NCBI GenBank assembly: GCA_964057225.1
Contig: OZ059899.1
Coordinates: 14,942,001-15,006,000 of the forward strand
DNA from: Auanema rhodensis
Taxonomy: Eukaryota > Animalia > Nematoda
DNA length: 64,000 nucleotides
Direction of reading: 5' to 3'
Positions within the stretch are counted from its first letter, which is position 1. Every line of letters starts with the position of its first letter. Position numbers and translations under genes: made by a program. This document shows, piece after piece, positions 24,656 through 35,493 of this stretch. Below the pieces are notes generated by a model. It searched no databases. It worked only from the letters and a program-made list of their open reading frames with translations, and had not been told where the DNA came from.

Positions 24656-24851
24656 AAAAATATACATTCTTTATCAACGAGTCTTAATAGATACATCTAA
24701 ACATTCTTAACACAACTTTATAAGTTGGACATAAAAATTTTTTTAAAAAATCCTGTTTTTTTTAAAACCTCTACAGAAAAACTTCAAATGCAAAAACACT
24801 AACTTCAAGTTTGATATAATAGTACTTTTCAAAAAACAACTTCTATACTTT

Positions 24852-27800
24852 TTACGCATTAATTCTAAAATGAGCTAAACGGGTATTACGAAGACTCAAA
24901 AGATCGCAGAAACGATGATAGTCATGGGATGAAGACGAATCACTAGATCCTTCTTCAAACGAGGATTGCCTGAAATTAAAACTAATAATACCACATAATA
25001 ATACAATTTCCAACAAATAAGCAGATAGAACATCTCTTCCACGTTCGGCATATCGGTTAGCGATATAGAGGGGAGCCGGCAGACTAATTGCACTATTTAC
25101 AATTTGATAACCGTGGGCTAAAGCGAATGTAACTCCTTCGAGTTCATCAAGGCACATATCAATTTCATCATAAAGAACAGTATAGCGAGGAGTCTTAGCA
25201 CTTCCCTGAACGATAAGTTCAATATATGACAATTGTTCAGCAATAGTTACCTGGATGGTGTTATGTGAATTCAAGTAGAATTCTTTGAAACTGGGATGAG
25301 TGAGTTCCGAATCAATTACTACTCCGGTCTTAATATTTTGCTGTATTGGCTTGTCGTTTGGATTAATCTAAACATCATACTTTACGGAAAAAACAACAAC
25401 AAAAATCTTTACCTTGCTCAACATTAATCGCACATTATGATCTTTCTGAGCGATTATCAAAGTTACCTTACACTTTTCTCCACCATAACTGTCAACATTA
25501 TGGCGAAGTAGTGGAATTTCATATTTCAAAATCTATGACAAATCAGATTAGAATAGCAAGAATAGAAATATACCGAAGTGAACGATCCTTCACCAACTCC
25601 GGATCTGTAGATAATTAATTCTTCTGGAGACTGACCATCATGACTCTGTTTGAAAAGTTCAAATGCTCGCTCTATTATAAATCCAATAGAAAGAGAAGTC
25701 TAAACAAAATTAAAATACTACACAAAACAAAAAAGTACGCAACCTCTTCTCGTCCGCTTTCTTGGAACATATAGTCTCCAATAAAATCTTGTGGGTTAGC
25801 TTTAAAATTGCCGCAGAACTGAAAACATGAACATACCAAAAAATGAAAGCAAAAGAAAATGTTTTCGTACTCCTACAACCGACGGCTTTCTTGACTTTAG
25901 ATCCTCTCGATGAACGGGAGGTGCATGACTGATCGCAATACCAATAATAAGTCTTTTGGGGGAAAACCATTCCCTAAATGAGATAGGATTGAAAATAATA
26001 AATTTTTAATACTCTTACCTGGCTTTAGGACCCATGGAAGTGAAGTTCACATTATAATTTATACCACCCAATTTTACATTGGTTTTTTGTATAATATTTT
26101 GAAGAGTTTGGAACTTATTTTCTTTAACCACTTTGAGAGCATTAGATATTTTAACATCTTGTGTGATGATTTCAAACTCGCGTTCAAACAATTTGATATT
26201 TTCTAAAATGTTGTTGAGGTAATTCAATGCTAGAGGCAAGCAATATTAACTGTGCAGTCCAGTGATACTGTCCGCTGTCACAAATAGACAAAACTGGCAA
26301 TCCGCGCTCTGCGCTAACTTCATCCTTTGTTTTAATTCCTGTTCTTCCAGAAGCTGAAATCGTAAAGACTCTTCAACGCTCTGTATTCAATTAAAGTTAC
26401 TCTTATTTCAGCAGGAGGTGATAAATCTGTTCCAAACTCTTGAAGCGAACGGTAAAACCGCAGAGCAAATTCCCTGAACAATCTATGCTTTTTAGTTAAC
26501 TCAGCAACTTACTCTAAATCTTTTAAATTAATCCCCATGCGAGAGCCAAGAGCATTGACTCCATAACATGCCCAAACTTTACAAAATCCGGACACATAAC
26601 ACTTTGCTCCTCTAGGAACCTTCCATTGGCCATGCTCGTAAGGGCCGTTACTGTTTTTGAACTGAATATTTGGGCCAGGTAGACATCGGCCATTTACCTA
26701 TTGTAATAAGCTTTTCAAACTGTATGACTTGCTCGATATACCATCAAAGGTCCAGGAAAAACTTTCAAGCCTGATTCATTTATATATTCATTGTTTTGAA
26801 CGCCACCTACAGGCAGAAGGTTTAGGGCATTAGCGCCTTTCATTATGTTCTGCTGTCTGGTCGATGGAGGAACGGCAGAGCTCTGGACGTAAAAATAAAA
26901 TAATCTTAATGATTATTATTATTACTCTAGTGGTCTTCTGGCTTTCAATAGGAGTTTGTTGCGGTACAGTCACACGTTGACCCGGAACAGTTTTACAAAC
27001 TTCCATGGGATAATAGTTCACTTGATTTCTTTCCCTTGTAGTGATCAAAGGTATTGTAGGATACCTAGAAAAAAAGTACAAGGTCGAATAACATTAAGAA
27101 AAACATCGTACTTCAACTCAATTTCGTATTTTTCTTTGAAATATTTTTCAACAGTCATTTTTCCATTGGGCATCTCAATACTGCAATTAAGCTATATGTT
27201 GCTTAAATCTTTTTTCGGAATTCAGAGCAAGTTCATCATTCGACTTACTTGGCCGAGACTGCCGTCAGTGTTGAAACACCGGTAATTTGTACACATCGAG
27301 GTCGACGAGAATGAGTTAACGTAACAAATATGCCTGAAAACGTTACAATTAAGCATAAAACATATTGAGAAATTCTATACCCTTTAAAACTTGATTAAGA
27401 CGATCAATGGAACGTTCACTATCAGGTCTGTCCTTTCCAACAATTTCCTGAGCTTTCTCAATCAAATTGATTCCCTCATGAAACGCTGCCTTCTTAGCTT
27501 AAGTACTTTGATGTTAAAACTTCTCGGGTACTTAACAAACCATCAATGATCAGACATGGGTTACTATAATTACGGCCTTTCGGTCCTTCAATTTGTCTAG
27601 TTGACTTTTGGGTACCGACCATCAACCGTTTGCCATCACCAACAAGTGGACAATCATTGCTACTAAAGTTATGATTCCATGGCTCAACCATGAAGGTTTT
27701 GCCATTTTCAAAAGACATGTGCACATCCCTACAACTATTAAAGCACATTACAATAATTTCAACTTACGGGTTCATAATGGCGTATTGATTAAGAACAAGC

Positions 27801-28576
27801 TCCATAAAATGAGCATATTCTCTTTTAATCTTCGAAAGATCATTGTTTGCTGAATGATTCAAAACTTCTTCGTCATTGAAAAACAGCTAAAATCAAAGAT
27901 GATTTCTAATTATAAACAAAAAATTTGTACATCGTTTTCAGTTCGCGCTATAGTTATTTGACAAATCAAAGTATCCAGTAGCGGAATTCCTGTATCTACT
28001 CCTTGAATTTCAATTTTGCAATCCTTCTAAAATACAGCTGTAGAAAACTTTTAAAAAATTCTACCGAAACCTTTCGTACGCAAATTTCTTTTGTAGAATA
28101 CAGTATGGCTTGTCCATCATACCAGTGAGAGTATATATTAGTTCCAAATATATCTGGTAGCTTTTCGAAAGCAGTTTTCATAATAGCCACACATTTTCTG
28201 CGTCGATCAGAAACGAGATGACTAAAATTATACACATTCGGGATACAAAATCTTAATAGAACTCGTCTTTAGCTTTGGCCGTGAACTCCACAGTTCTATT
28301 AGCATTAAGATCAGCTTTAATAAAAACGTGATATTGATAAATGTTTTGTCCTTCTGAAGGAGGTTTTAAACCAAAAATATTAGTTTGAATTCTCATAGGT
28401 GCTCCCGCAGTTCCGGGATCCACTTGTGGAGCCATAATGGGGTCATTTTCTTTGATCTAAATAACTCTGGTACAAGCTGACTGTATAAAACATACATCCA
28501 GATTTTTTAGACGTGTTCTAATGTCTTTGACAATCTGTTTTTTGGGTCCTAACTCCTGATCTGGGGAGGATGACAT
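24852..28576 (-). CDS. Worm-specific Argonaute (WAGO class), PAZ-MID-PIWI, non-catalytic; about 21 short introns
   Basis: ATG at 28576 (MSSSPDQELG..); PGTAGAPMRIQTNIFGL; GTQKSTRQIEGPKGR..PCLIIDG; YPTIPLI..YYPMEVC..PGQRV; QNIIQKTNVKLGGINY; LIIGIAISHAPP..PSVVG; IIYRSGVGEG; QGSAKTPRYTVLYD; SLPAPLYIANRYAERG; ends RINA stop, a typical WAGO C-terminus. Confidence 0.95.
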
Positions 28577-29385
28577 GCTCTATAATACGACATAAAAACA
28601 ACATTTTGAATTTTGAAAAATTTTGAAAGAACGATTAAAAAGTTCATAACATAGTTAACGAATAATTCATTCATTACACTTTAAAACAGTAAACTTTTTT
28701 TTAACTTATGTTCCGAACAATGGCAAAAATTAGTCTACTTGAACAACTTAGGCCAGATGTACAGCTTATTTAACTTACAGAATCAGAATCAAAAAAAACA
28801 CTGATGACTGTAATTTCTAGACAGGAGAATTAGCGCGCGAATTCAAATATACTGATATTTATGTTTATGGTGATAATCACTTCTCACCACCAAACAGCTT
28901 TTCCTCAAAAATGGGAAGTCAAACGAAAAAAAAGATCGACTGCTCAACAGAAAGTTGAAGCCCAGAATGAATCCAAAATATTGTGTTGTTTTTAACGTCT
29001 TGATCATATCTAGTACGGTGTTTATGCAAATTTTGGCGTTTCATAATTGTCCTTTACACCTTTATTTTCCCGCTTATTCTGTTTTTTTTTTATGACGGGC
29101 AAAATAAAGAGTTTTAGATTTTCAATTTTTCACAAATGGAATATGCTAAAATTATCTGAATTATCAGAATATTTTAAAAATTAATTTATAATGTATTGAA
29201 ATTAGTTTTCTACTTATCCTTCGATTTGTGATAGGTTCTCCGACAGCTGGTTATTTCACCAAGTTCGTAATATTCTGGTAAATGAAAATGAACTTAATTT
29301 TTAATCAGTCTTATTAATGTAAAACTTATAAAATATTGAGTGATATATAGATGAACGTAGCATTTATTACTCATTTTGACTCTGA
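28577..29385. promoter_or_regulatory. Probable bidirectional promoter between the Argonaute and the G-alpha, with a CDE/E2F-CHR-like element
   Basis: Start codons diverge about 810 bp apart; GCGCGCG (28833-28839) followed by TTCAAA (28842-28847) in otherwise very AT-rich DNA. Confidence 0.5.
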
Positions 29386-31078
29386 ATGATCGAAAGGCTT
29401 CATTACTTCTCCTTTAAACGATTATTTTGGTTTGTAATTATCGCAAACTTTCTTATTAAATTTTTGCTTTTTCTTCTTATAGTCATAAAAACAAACGTAA
29501 ACAGCATGTATCCCAAGCTTCTTACATTGATCAAAAAGAACTGAACTTGAAACTATCAGCTTTGGCTAAGTTCGAAATTTTCTCTTTACTATTTCGTAAT
29601 CTTATTTATTCTAAGTGAACGTAGTAAGGAGATTGATCAATATCTGAAAAACACTTTCCGATCTTATAAAGCGGTTTTAAAACTTTTGTTATTAGGTTTG
29701 CCATTTTCAGACCTATATTTTTACAAAAACTTTGAGTTTAGGCAGTGCATCAAGTGGTAAAAGCACGATTTTCAAACAGATGCAGTACAATGTGCTCATA
29801 ATTAAAATTTTAAAAAATATTTCCTTTTAGAATAATGCATACAACTGGGTCTACCTTGTCGGGACGACAAGATTATTTCAAAAAAGTAATATGCAAGAAT
29901 ATTTTTGAAATTTTTTTCAAACTTCGATCCGCAGCTGTGCAACTTAATTTTTCTCTCGAATCAATCAATGTACATTGAAGTACTTTTCAACTTGATTATC
30001 ATATTCTTAGGATATCGTGGCTGCGATTTGCGATGAAAATCGGAGATTGAATACCGATTGTGATTCGGAATATCTCACTGCTAGAGTAGCGGCATTTCTT
30101 AAGAAATTCTGGGAATCAGACGTAATACAATTGACTTATTTACAAAGATACAAAGTGGATTTGCCTGATTCTACAAAATAGTAAGTCAATAATAAGAAAT
30201 CTCGTATTAAATATATTGAAGTATTTTCTATTTATTTAGTTTTATGGAAAATCTAGAGAGAATAGGTCAATTTGAGTACATACCGAATTTTGAAGATATT
30301 TTACGTGTCAGAGAAGTAATTCATCTTACTCGTACTGCTGTTTATAACATTGATAAGATACAGTTTTGGTAATCCCCGACAGGAAATCACAAATTTCAAC
30401 ACTTTTTACAAGTTCTCTCATTCTTTTTAGCGTAGTTGACGTGGGTTATCACAGTTCATTACGGAAAAAATGGTCACACATCTTCGACGATGCAGCTGTT
30501 ATATTATATGTAGTAGATTTATTGGAATGCGTCGGGACACAAGATAGAACTGACGTAAATCATGAAAACTAATTGAAATACTTATTGACAAACATCGAAT
30601 TGTTGTCGGCAATTCGCATATGAATGAATTTGCTTCTTTGTCCTCGATTATCAGCATTGTTTTGCAGATTTTTGACATGAAACTGTCAGTAAACCTGTTC
30701 TCAGAAATAGCCACAAACCGACTGCTCATGAACTCTGTATTTATGCTCTTCTTAAACAAATGCGATATATTCCAAGATTTTATTGAGTCTTCCACCATTA
30801 GCGAAGGTACAATATATTACCATATACATTATACTGCTTTAATTTCACAATAGAACCTGTAATAGTTGATTGTGCACTTTTAAAAATTCGCAACGATTTC
30901 CTTCAAGCAGTGAAGCATCAAAGAAAATTGTATTGTCACAATATAATAGCTATTCGAACGGATAATATCCGGGTTTATACTTTCGTTTTAAACATCATAT
31001 ATATGATTTTTTTAGAGCATGTTTGATTCTAGTCTAACAAATATAATGCGCAAGAGATCTAGATTTACGCTTCTATGA
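29386..31078 (+). CDS. Highly divergent heterotrimeric G-protein alpha subunit (about 375 aa, 10 introns), catalytic motifs altered
   Basis: All phases join: MIERLHYFSFKRLFC|HKNKRK..LAN|ERSKEIDQYLK..LKLLLLG|SASSGKSTIFKQMQ|IMH..|..FWESDVIQ..LPDSTKY|FMENLERI..YIPNFEDILRVREVI..|VVDVGYHSSLRKKWSHIFDD..|..FMLFLNKCDIF..|..LYCHNIIAIRTDNIR|SMFDSSLTNIMRKRSRFTLL stop. Confidence 0.88.
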
Positions 31079-32449
31079 TGTAATATATCCAGCAAATTTT
31101 CAATTTTCAAGTCACACTGCTTATTAAAACATGTATCATTCCTATTTAGTATAACATATATACGTTCAACATTTAATAATAATAAAAAGTTGAGTGAATA
31201 GATTAGAAAACCGGCTATCAATGGTTTGTTTATATACTGAGACCAGCTGCCACAGCTAATCTAAACGTATCATCTCGTTTATATTTTTAATAATTTCAAA
31301 AAGCTCACATATCTCTTTACGGAATTAAAACATCTCATTTTTCACTTATATCAAATGATAAAAAACAATTCCGCAGATTTCTTAATATAGAGAAGATTAC
31401 AAGATACTTTCGATTGACTACTGGGCGTCTTTTCTGTGTAAAGTGTGCATGTTTGTGCCAATCATATAACGGCAGCATTATATTGGCCTCATCGATATAA
31501 GTATATATACAAGGCGTTTTTCATTATTTTTATCTCATTTTACATATTATTTTGTAATTTTAATTAAAATTGATCTAATAAATTGCATATTATTCATAAA
31601 TTTAATTATTATAACGCATGAATATAATATTGTATTATTTGAAACTTTATTAACCAAACATGTTATAAATAATTAAATTTTTGAGCAAAACTACGTGATA
31701 TGTTAAAGCTTTTATTTCAATTATAAAAATTGAGCTAGAAACATCCATCCCTTGTTCACTCTCTCGAAAAATGGTCTCATATGGATGTTGGTGTTGAAAC
31801 ATGAATGAGGAATCTGTCCCTATGCGTCAGTGGGGGGGGGTGTGCTATTGCTCAGCTTTTCGTTGGTTGTTGCTGCTCTTTTGTTATTTCCAGATATAGA
31901 TTTTAGAATCACTGTTCAGAGCATCGGGACCGGTCAGCGAACAGTTGAAGCTCGTTTGAGTGTTTATTATGTCGGCGGATAGGGGCGGGCAATGCTAGGT
32001 GTGCTGCTGCATGGCCTATGCGCAGTCATCATAAGAATTCTAGGGCAAGGAACGCATTCGTTACGGCCCCGATTTGTTTCCCTTCAATCGATTCACTAGC
32101 TCTCCGTGTCATATTTCGTCCGTTTTTCTAACTGTTTTAGAATATTTTTCTGAGCTACTGATTCATTCTTGATATCATTACTATTGATCGGTATTCTCTA
32201 TTTGTCCAATTCCTCTTATCTGTTCTCTCTTGAATGCATTAAATTCGTTGTATTTCAATATTTTTCTTACTGGCTTTGTCTATACCATCAGTAAAGTAGT
32301 TCTAAAATAGCTACGTGTTCTTATTGAATAACCATTATCTATGTCACAGATTTCATTTTCATTTGTGATGTTTCGTTACACGGTTGCTTTTTTTTCTACA
32401 TTGCCTGTAATGTTTTTATTATATTTTTCTTGTTTCCAGGCAATTCTTG

Positions 32450-34700
32450 ATGAAACATTTGTGGATATTTTTGGCCTTAAGTAGTCTAGTGATAGGGCAA
32501 TTTGACGATTCTAGACCATGCTTCTGTAAAGTGGGTGAAGTAGTGGAGCCTTGTGAGTGCACAACCAGTAGTATTGACAAAATCAATAATGAACATGTCT
32601 TTGATCAGTTGCATGCTTTGCTTAAAAAGGATTTTTTTAGGTTTTATAAGGTAATAATTTTCTGATGATATTTTTTACACTATGTATTCAGGTAAATATG
32701 GACAAAACTTGTCCTTTCTGGCCCGATGAGCGTCAATGTGGCACACAACAGTGCGGCATCGCGTTTTGTGATGACGAGGTTCCTCCCGGCTTGCGTCGTC
32801 CTGCTACCGTTACGGTGCGTCTGCCAAGGGTTTCCGTGGCAGCTCATCATAATCAAACCGCCGTCACGGTGGAAACGACATCTGTAATTCAGGAGGGTTG
32901 CATTGCCAAAGAGGAAAGTAATTCCTTTGATCCAATGGACCGTACCCTGAAAGAGAGTGAGCGCGAGCAACTAAAAGATATGGATATCTATGACGATCTG
33001 AGCGATAAATTCTGTGAAATCGAAGGTTAGTTTTTTCTATCCCGACTATAGTTGAAACATGTAGCTTTTAAATAATTCTATTTATTCAAAACACTCACAT
33101 TCTATCACAAAATTAGCTCATTTTAACAATTATTATTTGCGCAGCTGTAAATTATAATGCGTACACGAGCGCTTACAAAGTCTAACTTTTCCAATTTATT
33201 TGTTTTCAGATGAAGATTCCACAGATGTACACTATGTTGATCTGTCAAAGAATCCCGAAAGGTATACCGGTTATAAGGGTAACTCGGCTTTGAGAGTTTG
33301 GCAGAGTATTTATCAGGAAAACTGTTTCAAGTAAGCTTTGACATCAATCACACTGATTGAACCATAATATTACAGACCTGATATGAAATTCGACAAAAAG
33401 TTTTTAACCAATCCAAATAACTTCGGTAGGTTCTACTAATTTATTTCTCACATTTTGTTAACTTTTTTTGTTATAATAAGTTGCACTACCCAACTAACAA
33501 TCTAATCCATATCTCATTTAGAAGGTATGTTGGTTTTCGTATCAATGCAAGGTGTTGGGTAAAGTTCTCTCTGTTGCACGTTTTTACACTATTCTTGTCG
33601 TGTTTCTATTAGAAAAAAAAAGAAAAAAATTAATTCCGTGTGGTTTTCCCCGATTTTCCTTTTTGCTTTCTTGAGGATTTTATTTCGATTCTTAGGTCTC
33701 TGCTTGGAAAAGAGAGTTTTCTATAGACTCATTTCTGGTTTACATTCTGCTATCACAATTTCAATAGCCGCATATAACTTTAAAGAAGGTTAATATAGTT
33801 GGTCACAAAAAGTGTTCTTAACTATTTTGTTTTAGCACCAGGAGGTTTTGGCCCTGGAACTTGGTTTAGAAATACAGAGATGTTCGCCGGTCGTTTTGGT
33901 ACCAAATGGAGCTGGGAAGGTCCACAGCGGTATTATTTGATTTTTTGAACTTGTTTAATTTTTCAAATTCAGTCTTCGTAATGTATACTTCGTCTATTTG
34001 ATGGAACTTCGAGCATTGATTAAAGCTGCTCCCTATTTGAAAAAGGAACTCTTCTATACAGGAAATGATAAAGTAAAATAATAACACTTTCTTTTTCTCA
34101 TATTACAATCATTACAGGAAGATTCTGAAACTAGGGCTGCTATTGAACAATTGCTTGATGTCCTTCGTTCAATACCCTCTTCTTTCGATGAACATGAAAT
34201 GTTTACGGTAAAACTTGATTTTCTTTTTTTTATTTTGAATATAAATATTCTCTTTTTAGGGAGTTGAAGCTCAAGCAAGAGAACTCAGGGAAGAATTCCG
34301 TTCTCATTTCCATAATATTTCCCGTATTATGGATTGTGTAGAATGTGACAAATGTCGATTATGGGGAAAAGTTAGAACTCGAAAACAAAAAAAACAAAAA
34401 AACTTATACATGTTATATTTTCAGGTGCAAACGCACGGAATGGGTACAGCTTTAAAAATCCTTTTCTCTGATCTACCGCATTCACTTTATCATGGTAGCG
34501 AAAACTCTGAACTTAAAGCGGCAGCTCCATTCCAACTTACTAGGTATAGTGCTCACCAGTTAATTTGGAATCTAAATTGAATTAATTGTAGAAATGAAGT
34601 CGTTGCTCTGTTCCAAAGTTTCGGACGTTATTCATCAAGCATTCGGGAAATTCATGAATTCAGGAAAGATATGGTGCCTTTTATCAAGAACGAGCTTTAA
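32450..34700 (+). CDS. ero-1: ER oxidoreductin 1 (ERO1)
   Basis: Signal peptide then CFCK; DFFRFYK|[21 protein letters not shown] (shuttle cysteines); [14 protein letters not shown]; [10 protein letters not shown]; [17 protein letters not shown]; [19 protein letters not shown]|[14 protein letters not shown] (CxxCxxC active site); ends FIKNEL stop. Confidence 0.97.
33522..33524 (+). other. Candidate 3-nt microexon (AAG) in ero-1
   Basis: ctcatttag|AAG|gtatgt inside an unusually long 270-nt intron; inclusion changes F-G-L-C to F-E-G-L-C, matching the ERO1 EGLCxEKR motif. Confidence 0.65.
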
Positions 34701-35493
34701 GTCATTTTTTTGTTTACTTTTCCGTTTTTTTCGCTTGTTGTGCTTTTCCAAATTTCTATCTTCACTCCTTTACATCCGCACGTGGTAGTTTAGCGTAGGC
34801 ATATTTTCTTGTGATATTCATATCTATTTTTATTGAGTGTCTAAAGTTCGAGGAGTGAGCCCTTTCTATTATGGGTTTTCTTCTTTTTAATCGGCCTATT
34901 TAAGCCGACTTCTGTGATTTTATATGTACATAGCCGAAATCGTTAATTCAAGTATATCTTTGATATGTGCAATTTAAAATTAATAATAATAAATATTTAT
35001 TTTATATCTGTTGTCCTTGAATTACTGAAATTAGGGTTGAGAGGTGGATGGCCCATGCATGCACGTCGTTTACAAAAACGCTGTGGCCATATTGCATGTC
35101 TACAAGCTGAGGGCCCACCGGAATAACTTAACCTCAACTAAGTTCTAATTAAGCTAATATTAATTATGAAACAGCAGACCTGAGCTGGAAGAATCTTATC
35201 AGCAATTTATTAGTTTTTAAAACTGTCAACATAAAACTCTGTTAAAATACAGTGGTGCTCTTCAAACCAAGCTAACTATTCAAATCCTTAAATCCTTACT
35301 GATTATTCCATATAAATTCATCTTTTCATATTATTATTGCTATCTTTTTACATTTCTTCTTAAAACATAATGAATATATGACATTTTGTTCTTACCCCGC
35401 CAGTTTTTTATCAAACTCGTGATATGTTGCTTCCACATTATGCACATTCTGTTGAATTAGCAACAACATTAAGTCATAATTTTTAGAATTTTC

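Follow-up and report, generated by a model that had tools for sequence, protein, structure and literature searches.

A candidate non-switching G-alpha of Gi/o/q-type ancestry in the nematode Auanema rhodensis

G-alpha subunits of animals serve as a textbook example of GTP switches. Where members of the family without a working switch have been described in nature, this has been mainly in plants, among the XLG proteins. The switch can be disabled by single substitutions: subunits carrying G203A (Gi-alpha-1) or G226A (Gs-alpha) fail to release G-beta-gamma, G183S and other substitutions of Gly183 block the action of regulators of G-protein signalling (RGS proteins), and substitutions of Gln204 abolish hydrolysis. 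Engineered dominant-negative G-alphas bind both nucleotide and G-beta-gamma without dissociating on activation, and E245 is altered in such designs. In nematodes, the described GPA proteins retain, to our knowledge, the canonical switch residues; a literature search turned up no account of a nematode G-alpha with a dead switch, and gpa-18 was met there only in a list of genes. A review counts 21 G-alphas, 17 of them nematode-specific (PMC8045692), and plant XLG2 has been described as a decoy G-alpha, with reported nucleotide-independent binding to G-beta-gamma and RGS (bioRxiv 10.1101/795088). Here we analyse a G-alpha gene of 11 exons at positions 29386-31078 of the forward strand in a stretch of 64,000 nucleotides (nt) of the Auanema rhodensis contig OZ059899.1 (assembly GCA_964057225.1, positions 14,942,001 to 15,006,000), referred to below as the window, in which the residues of the GTP switch are extensively rewritten. 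We think it probable, judging from the residues kept and lost, that the gene encodes a nucleotide-binding, non-switching G-alpha retained by selection, which would act as a permanent binder or decoy and not as a switch.

The A. rhodensis protein resembles each of the described systems in part. With the nematode-specific G-alphas (C. elegans ODR-3, GPA-1 to GPA-11 and GPA-13 to GPA-17, all Gi/o-like) it shares Gi/o-like ancestry, a position outside the four universal classes, restriction to one lineage and fast evolution, and a gene for a chemoreceptor of the Srw type lies near it; it differs from the described C. elegans GPAs in that all three of its switches are rewritten. Like XLG2, it is a natural G-alpha homologue without the residues needed for the GTP cycle, a likeness that is one of analogy and not of membership: the XLGs are plant proteins with a long N-terminal extension containing a Cys-rich region and with degenerate nucleotide motifs, whereas the A. 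rhodensis protein has 378 amino acids, carries no long Cys-rich extension and keeps both the P-loop and NKxD. As in the engineered dominant negatives (Gi-alpha-1 G203A and G203A/A326S, Gs-alpha G226A; PDB 1gg2, 5tdh, 7ts0), the hinge glycine of switch II and E245 are both replaced; those designs, however, carry between one and four laboratory mutations, whereas those in A. rhodensis arose in nature, go much further and have been conserved between species.

Switch regions in two Auanema species

The comparison rests on an orthologue from a second species. An exhaustive HMMER search of 1.84 billion representative proteins, with exon 9 as the query, returned five matches, of which one was close (56% identity over the exon) and the remainder were generic or artefactual. 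The close match, P0001, has 379 residues, comes from Auanema sp. JU1783, where it is listed as an 'unnamed protein product', and is encoded on the contig locus L001; its overall identity to the A. rhodensis protein is about 43%, and a tblastn search with it against the window recovered every exon of our gene model and nothing else. The two proteins were compared by exon-by-exon pairwise alignment. Residue numbers are those of Gi-alpha-1, taken from PDB chain numbering and from knowledge of that protein; the register of switch I, switch II and NKCD was set by exon-wise phmmer searches against the G-alpha chains of the PDB, and the P-loop and the IIAI motif were read directly.

The P-loop is contained in exon 4 (43 nt, 29742..29784), which encodes G-SASSGKST-IFKQM. 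The motif is GSASSGKST in A. rhodensis, with Ala for G42 and Ser for E43, and GSPSSGKST in P0001, and the Walker A pattern GxxxxGK[ST] is kept in both. Switch I follows helix F and linker 2 in exon 7 (129 nt, 30240..30368) and reads LRVREVIHL: R178 is kept, and after Glu and Val come Ile, His and Leu in the places of T181, T182 and G183. In P0001 T181 is Val and the two following residues are replaced as well, which leaves Arg178 as the surviving half of the G2 pair Arg178 and Thr181. Exon 8 (124 nt, 30431..30554) spans beta-3, switch II, alpha-2, beta-4 and switch III and reads DVGYHSSLRKKW. Here D200, Val and G202 are followed by Tyr (G203), His (Q204), Ser (R205), Ser (S206) and Leu (E207), then RKKW, and other residues stand in place of the acidic loop of switch III. 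In place of the G3 pattern DxxGQ there stands DVGYH in A. rhodensis and DVGNQ in P0001; position 203 is thus Tyr in one species and Asn in the other, and the change of Gln204 to His is confined to A. rhodensis. Exon 9 (139 nt, 30668..30806), which comprises alpha-3 and beta-5, has Asp for R242 and Leu for E245 and keeps the G4 box, which is NKCD in A. rhodensis (aligned to NKKD) and NKFD in P0001. The G5 box in exon 10 (119 nt, 30854..30972; alpha-4 and beta-6) departs from TCAT to IIAI in A. rhodensis and to LVAV in P0001, with only Ala326 preserved.

How old is this rewriting? In 22 of the 68 alignment columns that are invariant in three canonical outgroup G-alphas, the canonical residue has been lost in both Auanema species. 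The residues lost in both include G42, E43, T181, T182, G183, E186, G203, R205, E207, E236 and D237 of switch III, R242, E245, K277 and the two threonines of TCAT, a set which, from the structures of Gi-alpha-1, represents the sensing of gamma-phosphate and Mg, the salt bridges of the active state and the binding of RGS proteins. About 10 of the 22 shared losses carry the identical new residue in both species (E43S, E186T, E207L, D237T, R242D, E245L and K277F among them), and the rewritten state is therefore an ancestral one that has itself been conserved.

Purifying selection against a saturated background

The two genes consist of the same 11 exons with identical intron phases. Exon lengths are 44, 87, 80, 43, 139, 170, 129, 124, 139, 119 and 63 nt in A. 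rhodensis and 50, 87, 80, 43, 139, 161, 129, 127, 142, 119 and 63 nt in Auanema sp. JU1783, so that the four differences (6, 9, 3 and 3 nt) are all multiples of three, an outcome with P of about 0.012 under neutrality. The coding sequence of 1137 nt comprises 378 codons and a TGA stop, and the chance of 378 open codons arising in random sequence of the composition of these exons is about 2e-13. The introns of the two genes have diverged to the level of random sequence (identity 0.448, against 0.454 for shuffled introns), whereas the exons have not (0.61, against 0.51 for shuffled exons).

The same picture emerges when differences are counted exon by exon with the Nei-Gojobori method over 366 aligned codons. 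The proportion of synonymous differences (pS) between the species is 0.82, compared with 0.76 from random pairing of codons; being at or above the random level, it indicates that synonymous sites are saturated, as they are across the whole collinear stretch. The proportion of non-synonymous differences (pN), in turn, is 0.353 against 0.72 from random codon pairing, or half of it. The bootstrap interval of pN/pS, 0.37-0.50, is an upper bound for omega. Randomised introns, saturated pS and halved pN together show purifying selection and not a pseudogene, which would have been randomised, and we conclude from the sequences of the two species that such selection has acted on the G-alpha over the greater part of the interval since they split. 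Non-synonymous divergence (dN) is 0.40-0.48 for the G-alpha against 0.08-0.34 in neighbouring genes, with the adjacent Argonaute at 0.34, and the G-alpha thus outpaces most of its neighbours in evolution, its rate being close to that of the Argonaute. Over aligned exon pieces the amino-acid identity of the Srw receptor is highest at 88%, followed by the zinc-finger protein (72%), Yip1 (66%) and the Argonaute (59%), with the G-alpha lowest at 50%.

An initial annotation of this DNA, made from the letters of the A. rhodensis sequence, had described an intact 11-exon G-alpha reading frame free of stops and frameshifts and had taken its intactness as a sign of selection. Both statements are borne out, the first by the 378 codons, the GT-AG borders of all introns and an orthologue with the same exons, the second by that orthologue's collinear position, the restriction of length differences to in-frame ones, and the intron, pS and pN values given above. 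Its list of motifs also stands, since GSASSGKST, the kept catalytic Arg, the changes of Thr to Ile, hinge Gly to Tyr and Gln to His, NKCD and IIAI could all be placed by alignment or direct reading. The dN/dS comparison with an orthologue that it had called for succeeded in part: pN yields purifying selection, while a proper ratio is precluded by the saturation of synonymous divergence (dS).

Possible permanent binding and its alternatives

What could be maintained by selection in a G-alpha with such switches? The residues kept in both species are S44 to T48 of the P-loop, D150 and S151 (in exon 6), L175, R176 and R178 (in exon 7), D200, N269, K270 and D272, and A326, along with S206, R208, K210, W211, H213 and F215 of switch II. 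On the basis of Gi-alpha-1 structures this set corresponds to the contacts of the GDP moiety and to part of the face that meets G-beta. The retention of all GDP-contact residues argues for a protein that still binds nucleotide without switching, rather than for one in which nucleotide binding has been lost. By sequence, a GTPase fold that is kept under selection after the loss of the residues for hydrolysis and switching would place the protein among the pseudoGTPases.

Thr181, Gly183 and Gly203, the ionic network of E43, E207, R242 and E245 and the acidic switch III loop had already gone in the ancestor from which both species descend; the A. rhodensis lineage has lost the catalytic Gln204 in addition. 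The resulting protein would have a normal G-alpha fold with guanine nucleotide still bound, would be incapable of the GTP-driven transition and insensitive to RGS proteins, and in A. rhodensis would have no useful rate of GTP hydrolysis. With neither transition, hydrolysis nor RGS action available, its action would be independent of the nucleotide state. Constitutive binding is then the likely mode of action, with G-beta-gamma as the most plausible partner and receptors perhaps as another, and the most likely role of the protein would be that of a membrane-attached decoy or sink for either or both, in effect a natural dominant negative. The initial annotation had likewise proposed a G-alpha that does not cycle. 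That proposal is now well supported by sequence comparison, through the absence in both species of T181, G203 and the E43/E207/R242/E245 network and through residue 204, at which glutamine is not conserved within the family; the functional role attached to it (scaffold, G-beta-gamma sink or constitutive signal) can be put forward as conjecture.

Attachment to the membrane would have to rely on something other than the usual lipid. The A. rhodensis protein has no Gly2 and hence no myristoylation site; it is longer than Gi-alpha-1 by about 33 residues at the N-terminus. Exon 1 (44 nt, 29386..29429) holds the ATG, 14 codons and two nucleotides that open a Cys codon spanning the junction with exon 2 (87 nt, 29483..29569), which completes the Cys, continues directly with the basic patch HKNKRK and begins the N-terminal helix. 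The model of exon 1 is speculative, and it is backed by P0001, whose independently annotated gene has a first exon of the same phase with the same junction Cys. The missing start Met-Gly and the CHKNKRK patch remarked upon in the initial annotation are therefore confirmed. With no myristoyl anchor present, palmitoylation of the conserved junction Cys, which adjoins the basic patch, would take its place.

Could the pocket have been given up altogether, leaving a nucleotide-free scaffold that acts purely through protein-protein contacts? The changes at E43, T181, G203, C325 and T327 would fit such a protein, and plant XLG2 provides a precedent (bioRxiv 10.1101/795088). We nevertheless regard this as unlikely, since GxxxxGKST, D150/S151, L175/R176, NKxD and Ala326 have all been kept in both species despite about 43% identity and saturated neutral divergence, which is hard to explain if the pocket is not in use.

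It is quite unlikely, too, that the protein is an atypical GTPase which still cycles, a fast-evolving chemosensory G-alpha with some non-canonical arrangement of its active site, such as a His at the Gln position, as in translational GTPases, working together with Arg178. The equivalents of Thr181 and Gly203 are the two universal gamma-phosphate sensors of GTPases, and both have been replaced in both species by differing bulky or hydrophobic residues (Ile or Val, and Tyr or Asn, respectively). A change from Gln to His at position 204 renders Ras and G-alpha GTPase-deficient, and the difference between the species at this residue implies that the chemistry of hydrolysis is not what selection maintains. 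What a cycling enzyme would account for is the persistence in both species of the P-loop, NKxD, Ala326, Asp200 and Arg178, together with Gln204 in P0001, and divergence as such is known from the nematode-specific G-alphas (PMC8045692).

A dying gene, functional until recently and now a pseudogene in A. rhodensis in which no stop has yet arisen, is most improbable: the loss of Gln204 in this species alone, the lack of RNA support in three small runs labelled as the same species and the weak to moderate splice donors (GTTTGT, GTTCGA, GTACAA) would suit it, but 378 open codons, ten GT-AG introns and in-frame length differences from the orthologue would not, and neither would the count of ancestral residues, defined by columns in which three canonical G-alphas agree, of which A. 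rhodensis has kept 10 that P0001 has lost as against 5 in the reverse direction, indicating no extra decay in the A. rhodensis lineage.

A nucleotide-binding G-alpha that has ceased to switch thus remains our preferred account, and several points weigh against it. P0001 has both Gln204 and Arg178, so slow hydrolysis could take place in the orthologue. Canonical G-alphas use the alpha-5 helix and the N-terminus for their contacts with receptors and G-beta-gamma, and these are the least conserved parts of the Auanema proteins, which weakens the idea of a receptor decoy: exon 1 is lowest in conservation (3 of 14 residues) and exon 11, which encodes the C-terminal alpha-5 helix and the TGA stop (63 nt, 31016..31078), is poor (4 of 20), compared with 15 of 26 in exon 3, 10 of 13 in the P-loop exon and 25 of 41 in exon 8, the best conserved of the long exons. 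The signal of selection averages the histories of the two lineages and may conceal a function that A. rhodensis lost only very recently. The lists of contact residues derive from knowledge of Gi-alpha-1 and not from a ligand- or partner-bound model of the A. rhodensis protein. Finally, no public RNA run was found to contain this stretch, and the three small RNA runs labelled as the same species had no matching reads, which does not amount to a test of expression.

A broader interpretation can be ventured, tentatively and with more doubt than the one just defended. In the Auanema protein the XLG decoys of plants may have their first counterpart among animals: a G-alpha of Gi/o descent turned natural dominant negative, acting whatever its nucleotide state, that holds G-beta-gamma, receptors or both at the membrane and so sets the gain of G-protein-coupled receptor signalling; selection would keep the pocket for GDP and the face that meets G-beta, and the switch chemistry would be left to drift. 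If this is true, the decoy or dominant-negative state known from the laboratory in mutants of the G203A type has also been reached in nature, and Auanema, in which genome editing has reportedly been achieved, would offer a genetically tractable case of a G-alpha with a role that does not involve cycling. The significance is tempered by the fact that the family is known from two genomes only.

Ancestry, gene structure and neighbourhood

Membership in the G-alpha family is apparent at several levels. The Pfam G-alpha profile (PF00503) is matched separately by four A. rhodensis exons at collinear profile positions (99-142, which fall in exon 6, then 144-169, 187-217 and 232-273) with scores, in rising order, of 14.4, 20, 25.7 and 35.3 bits; each score lies below the cut-off of 48.8 bits, and their rough sum is 95 bits. 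The A. rhodensis gene was treated exon by exon, and the full-length Pfam scan and fold prediction were done on P0001, which scores 183.9 bits; five canonical G-alphas, which come from plants, Trichoplax, a protist and sources without a name, reach 266-371 bits. The AF2 model of P0001 (pLDDT 79.5) consists of a Ras-like domain with an inserted helical domain, and its best Foldseek matches are Gt, Gi and Gq structures, transducin and Gi foremost, with TM values of 0.75-0.85 by target; the Atlas model agrees. Sequence similarity does not resolve the class, P0001 being roughly equidistant from Gi/o/t, Gq/11 and plant GPA1 (105-127 bits).

Gene structure is more telling. Exons 7, 8 and 9 (129, 124 and 139 nt) have the same border residues and phases as the exons of 129, 130 and 154 nt in an invertebrate G-alpha-i gene (L002, 10680-14174), and these are the ancestral borders of Gi/o and also Gq genes, with phases 2+1, 2+1, 0 and 1. 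The 43 nt of exon 4 presumably equal the size of the P-loop exon of the Gi class, no upstream exons of the L002 gene having been found for comparison. The ancestral exon borders are shared by GNAI and GNAQ genes, and altered borders occur in C. elegans GOA-1, GPA-4 and GPA-16 (PMC5896119); the Auanema gene, for all its divergence, preserves borders whose loss is reported for Gi/o-like genes of C. elegans. We conclude from fold matches and exon borders that the Auanema protein is a highly diverged G-alpha of Gi/o/q-type ancestry.

Two observations were made on other G-alphas in the course of these comparisons. In the G-alpha-i models P0003, P0004 and L002 14021-14627 the 154-nt exon is present twice, and the two look like mutually exclusive copies that the gene caller has read through. 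The protein P0005 (674 amino acids) is made up of two tandem G-alpha-like halves, each with the P-loop GSSDSGKST and the switch II sequence DVSGLSHHR, without the Gly-Gln pair; it is another natural G-alpha with rewritten switch II, and our guess from its sequence is a fungal origin.

Sequence searches have so far found the present family only in A. rhodensis and Auanema sp. JU1783. A word search with P0001 as the query yielded three distant G-alphas and no further member, and a further search, in which the query was a profile built from P0001 and five A. rhodensis exon pieces, yielded 233 G-alphas, mostly plant GPA1 and all at or below 32% identity; these matches reflect shared words and not relationship, for which reason no tree was built on that sample. 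None of the matches of these searches was a GPA sequence of C. elegans or another nematode, and the ESM Atlas neighbours of the G-alpha were generic G-alphas only.

The gene model, rebuilt from sequence, is completed by three exons: exon 3 (80 nt, 29616..29695), which encodes the N-terminal helix and beta-1 (ERSKEID...KLLLL) and stops one nucleotide into the codon of the first P-loop Gly, and exons 5 (139 nt, 29831..29969) and 6 (170 nt, 30011..30180), of which the former holds linker 1 and helix A and the latter continues the helical domain to LPDSTK and a split Tyr codon. The ten introns, each bounded by GT and AG, are 41-113 nt long, short as in other nematodes, and have a GC content of 25.9%, against 34.6% in the exons; the window is AT-rich overall (34% GC). 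An AATAAA at 31181..31186 on the forward strand, 103 nt past the stop codon, is a possible polyadenylation signal, although the motif is weak evidence in an AT-rich genome. A search for X-box (RFX) motifs found none in the promoters of the G-alpha genes of either species, with counts at chance level. An antisense open reading frame of 99 codons (30499-30798, reverse strand), overlapping exons 8 and 9 and intron 8, is without a Pfam match and without a counterpart in L001, and we take it to be a product of chance.

Synteny extends well beyond the gene. The whole 21.6 kb of L001 (3400-21592) is collinear by tblastx with 22.6-41.3 kb of the window, and the order of genes in L001 is Srw-type receptor, Argonaute on the opposite strand, G-alpha, Yip1 and zinc-finger. 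Conserved coding pieces were also detected by tblastx at 31880-35000 of the window (the ero-1 region) and at 11600-15900 of L001, where no gene is on record. The Argonaute, a Piwi/PAZ protein encoded on the reverse strand of the window at 24844-28600, stands head-to-head with the G-alpha, and the pair is conserved in Auanema sp. JU1783.

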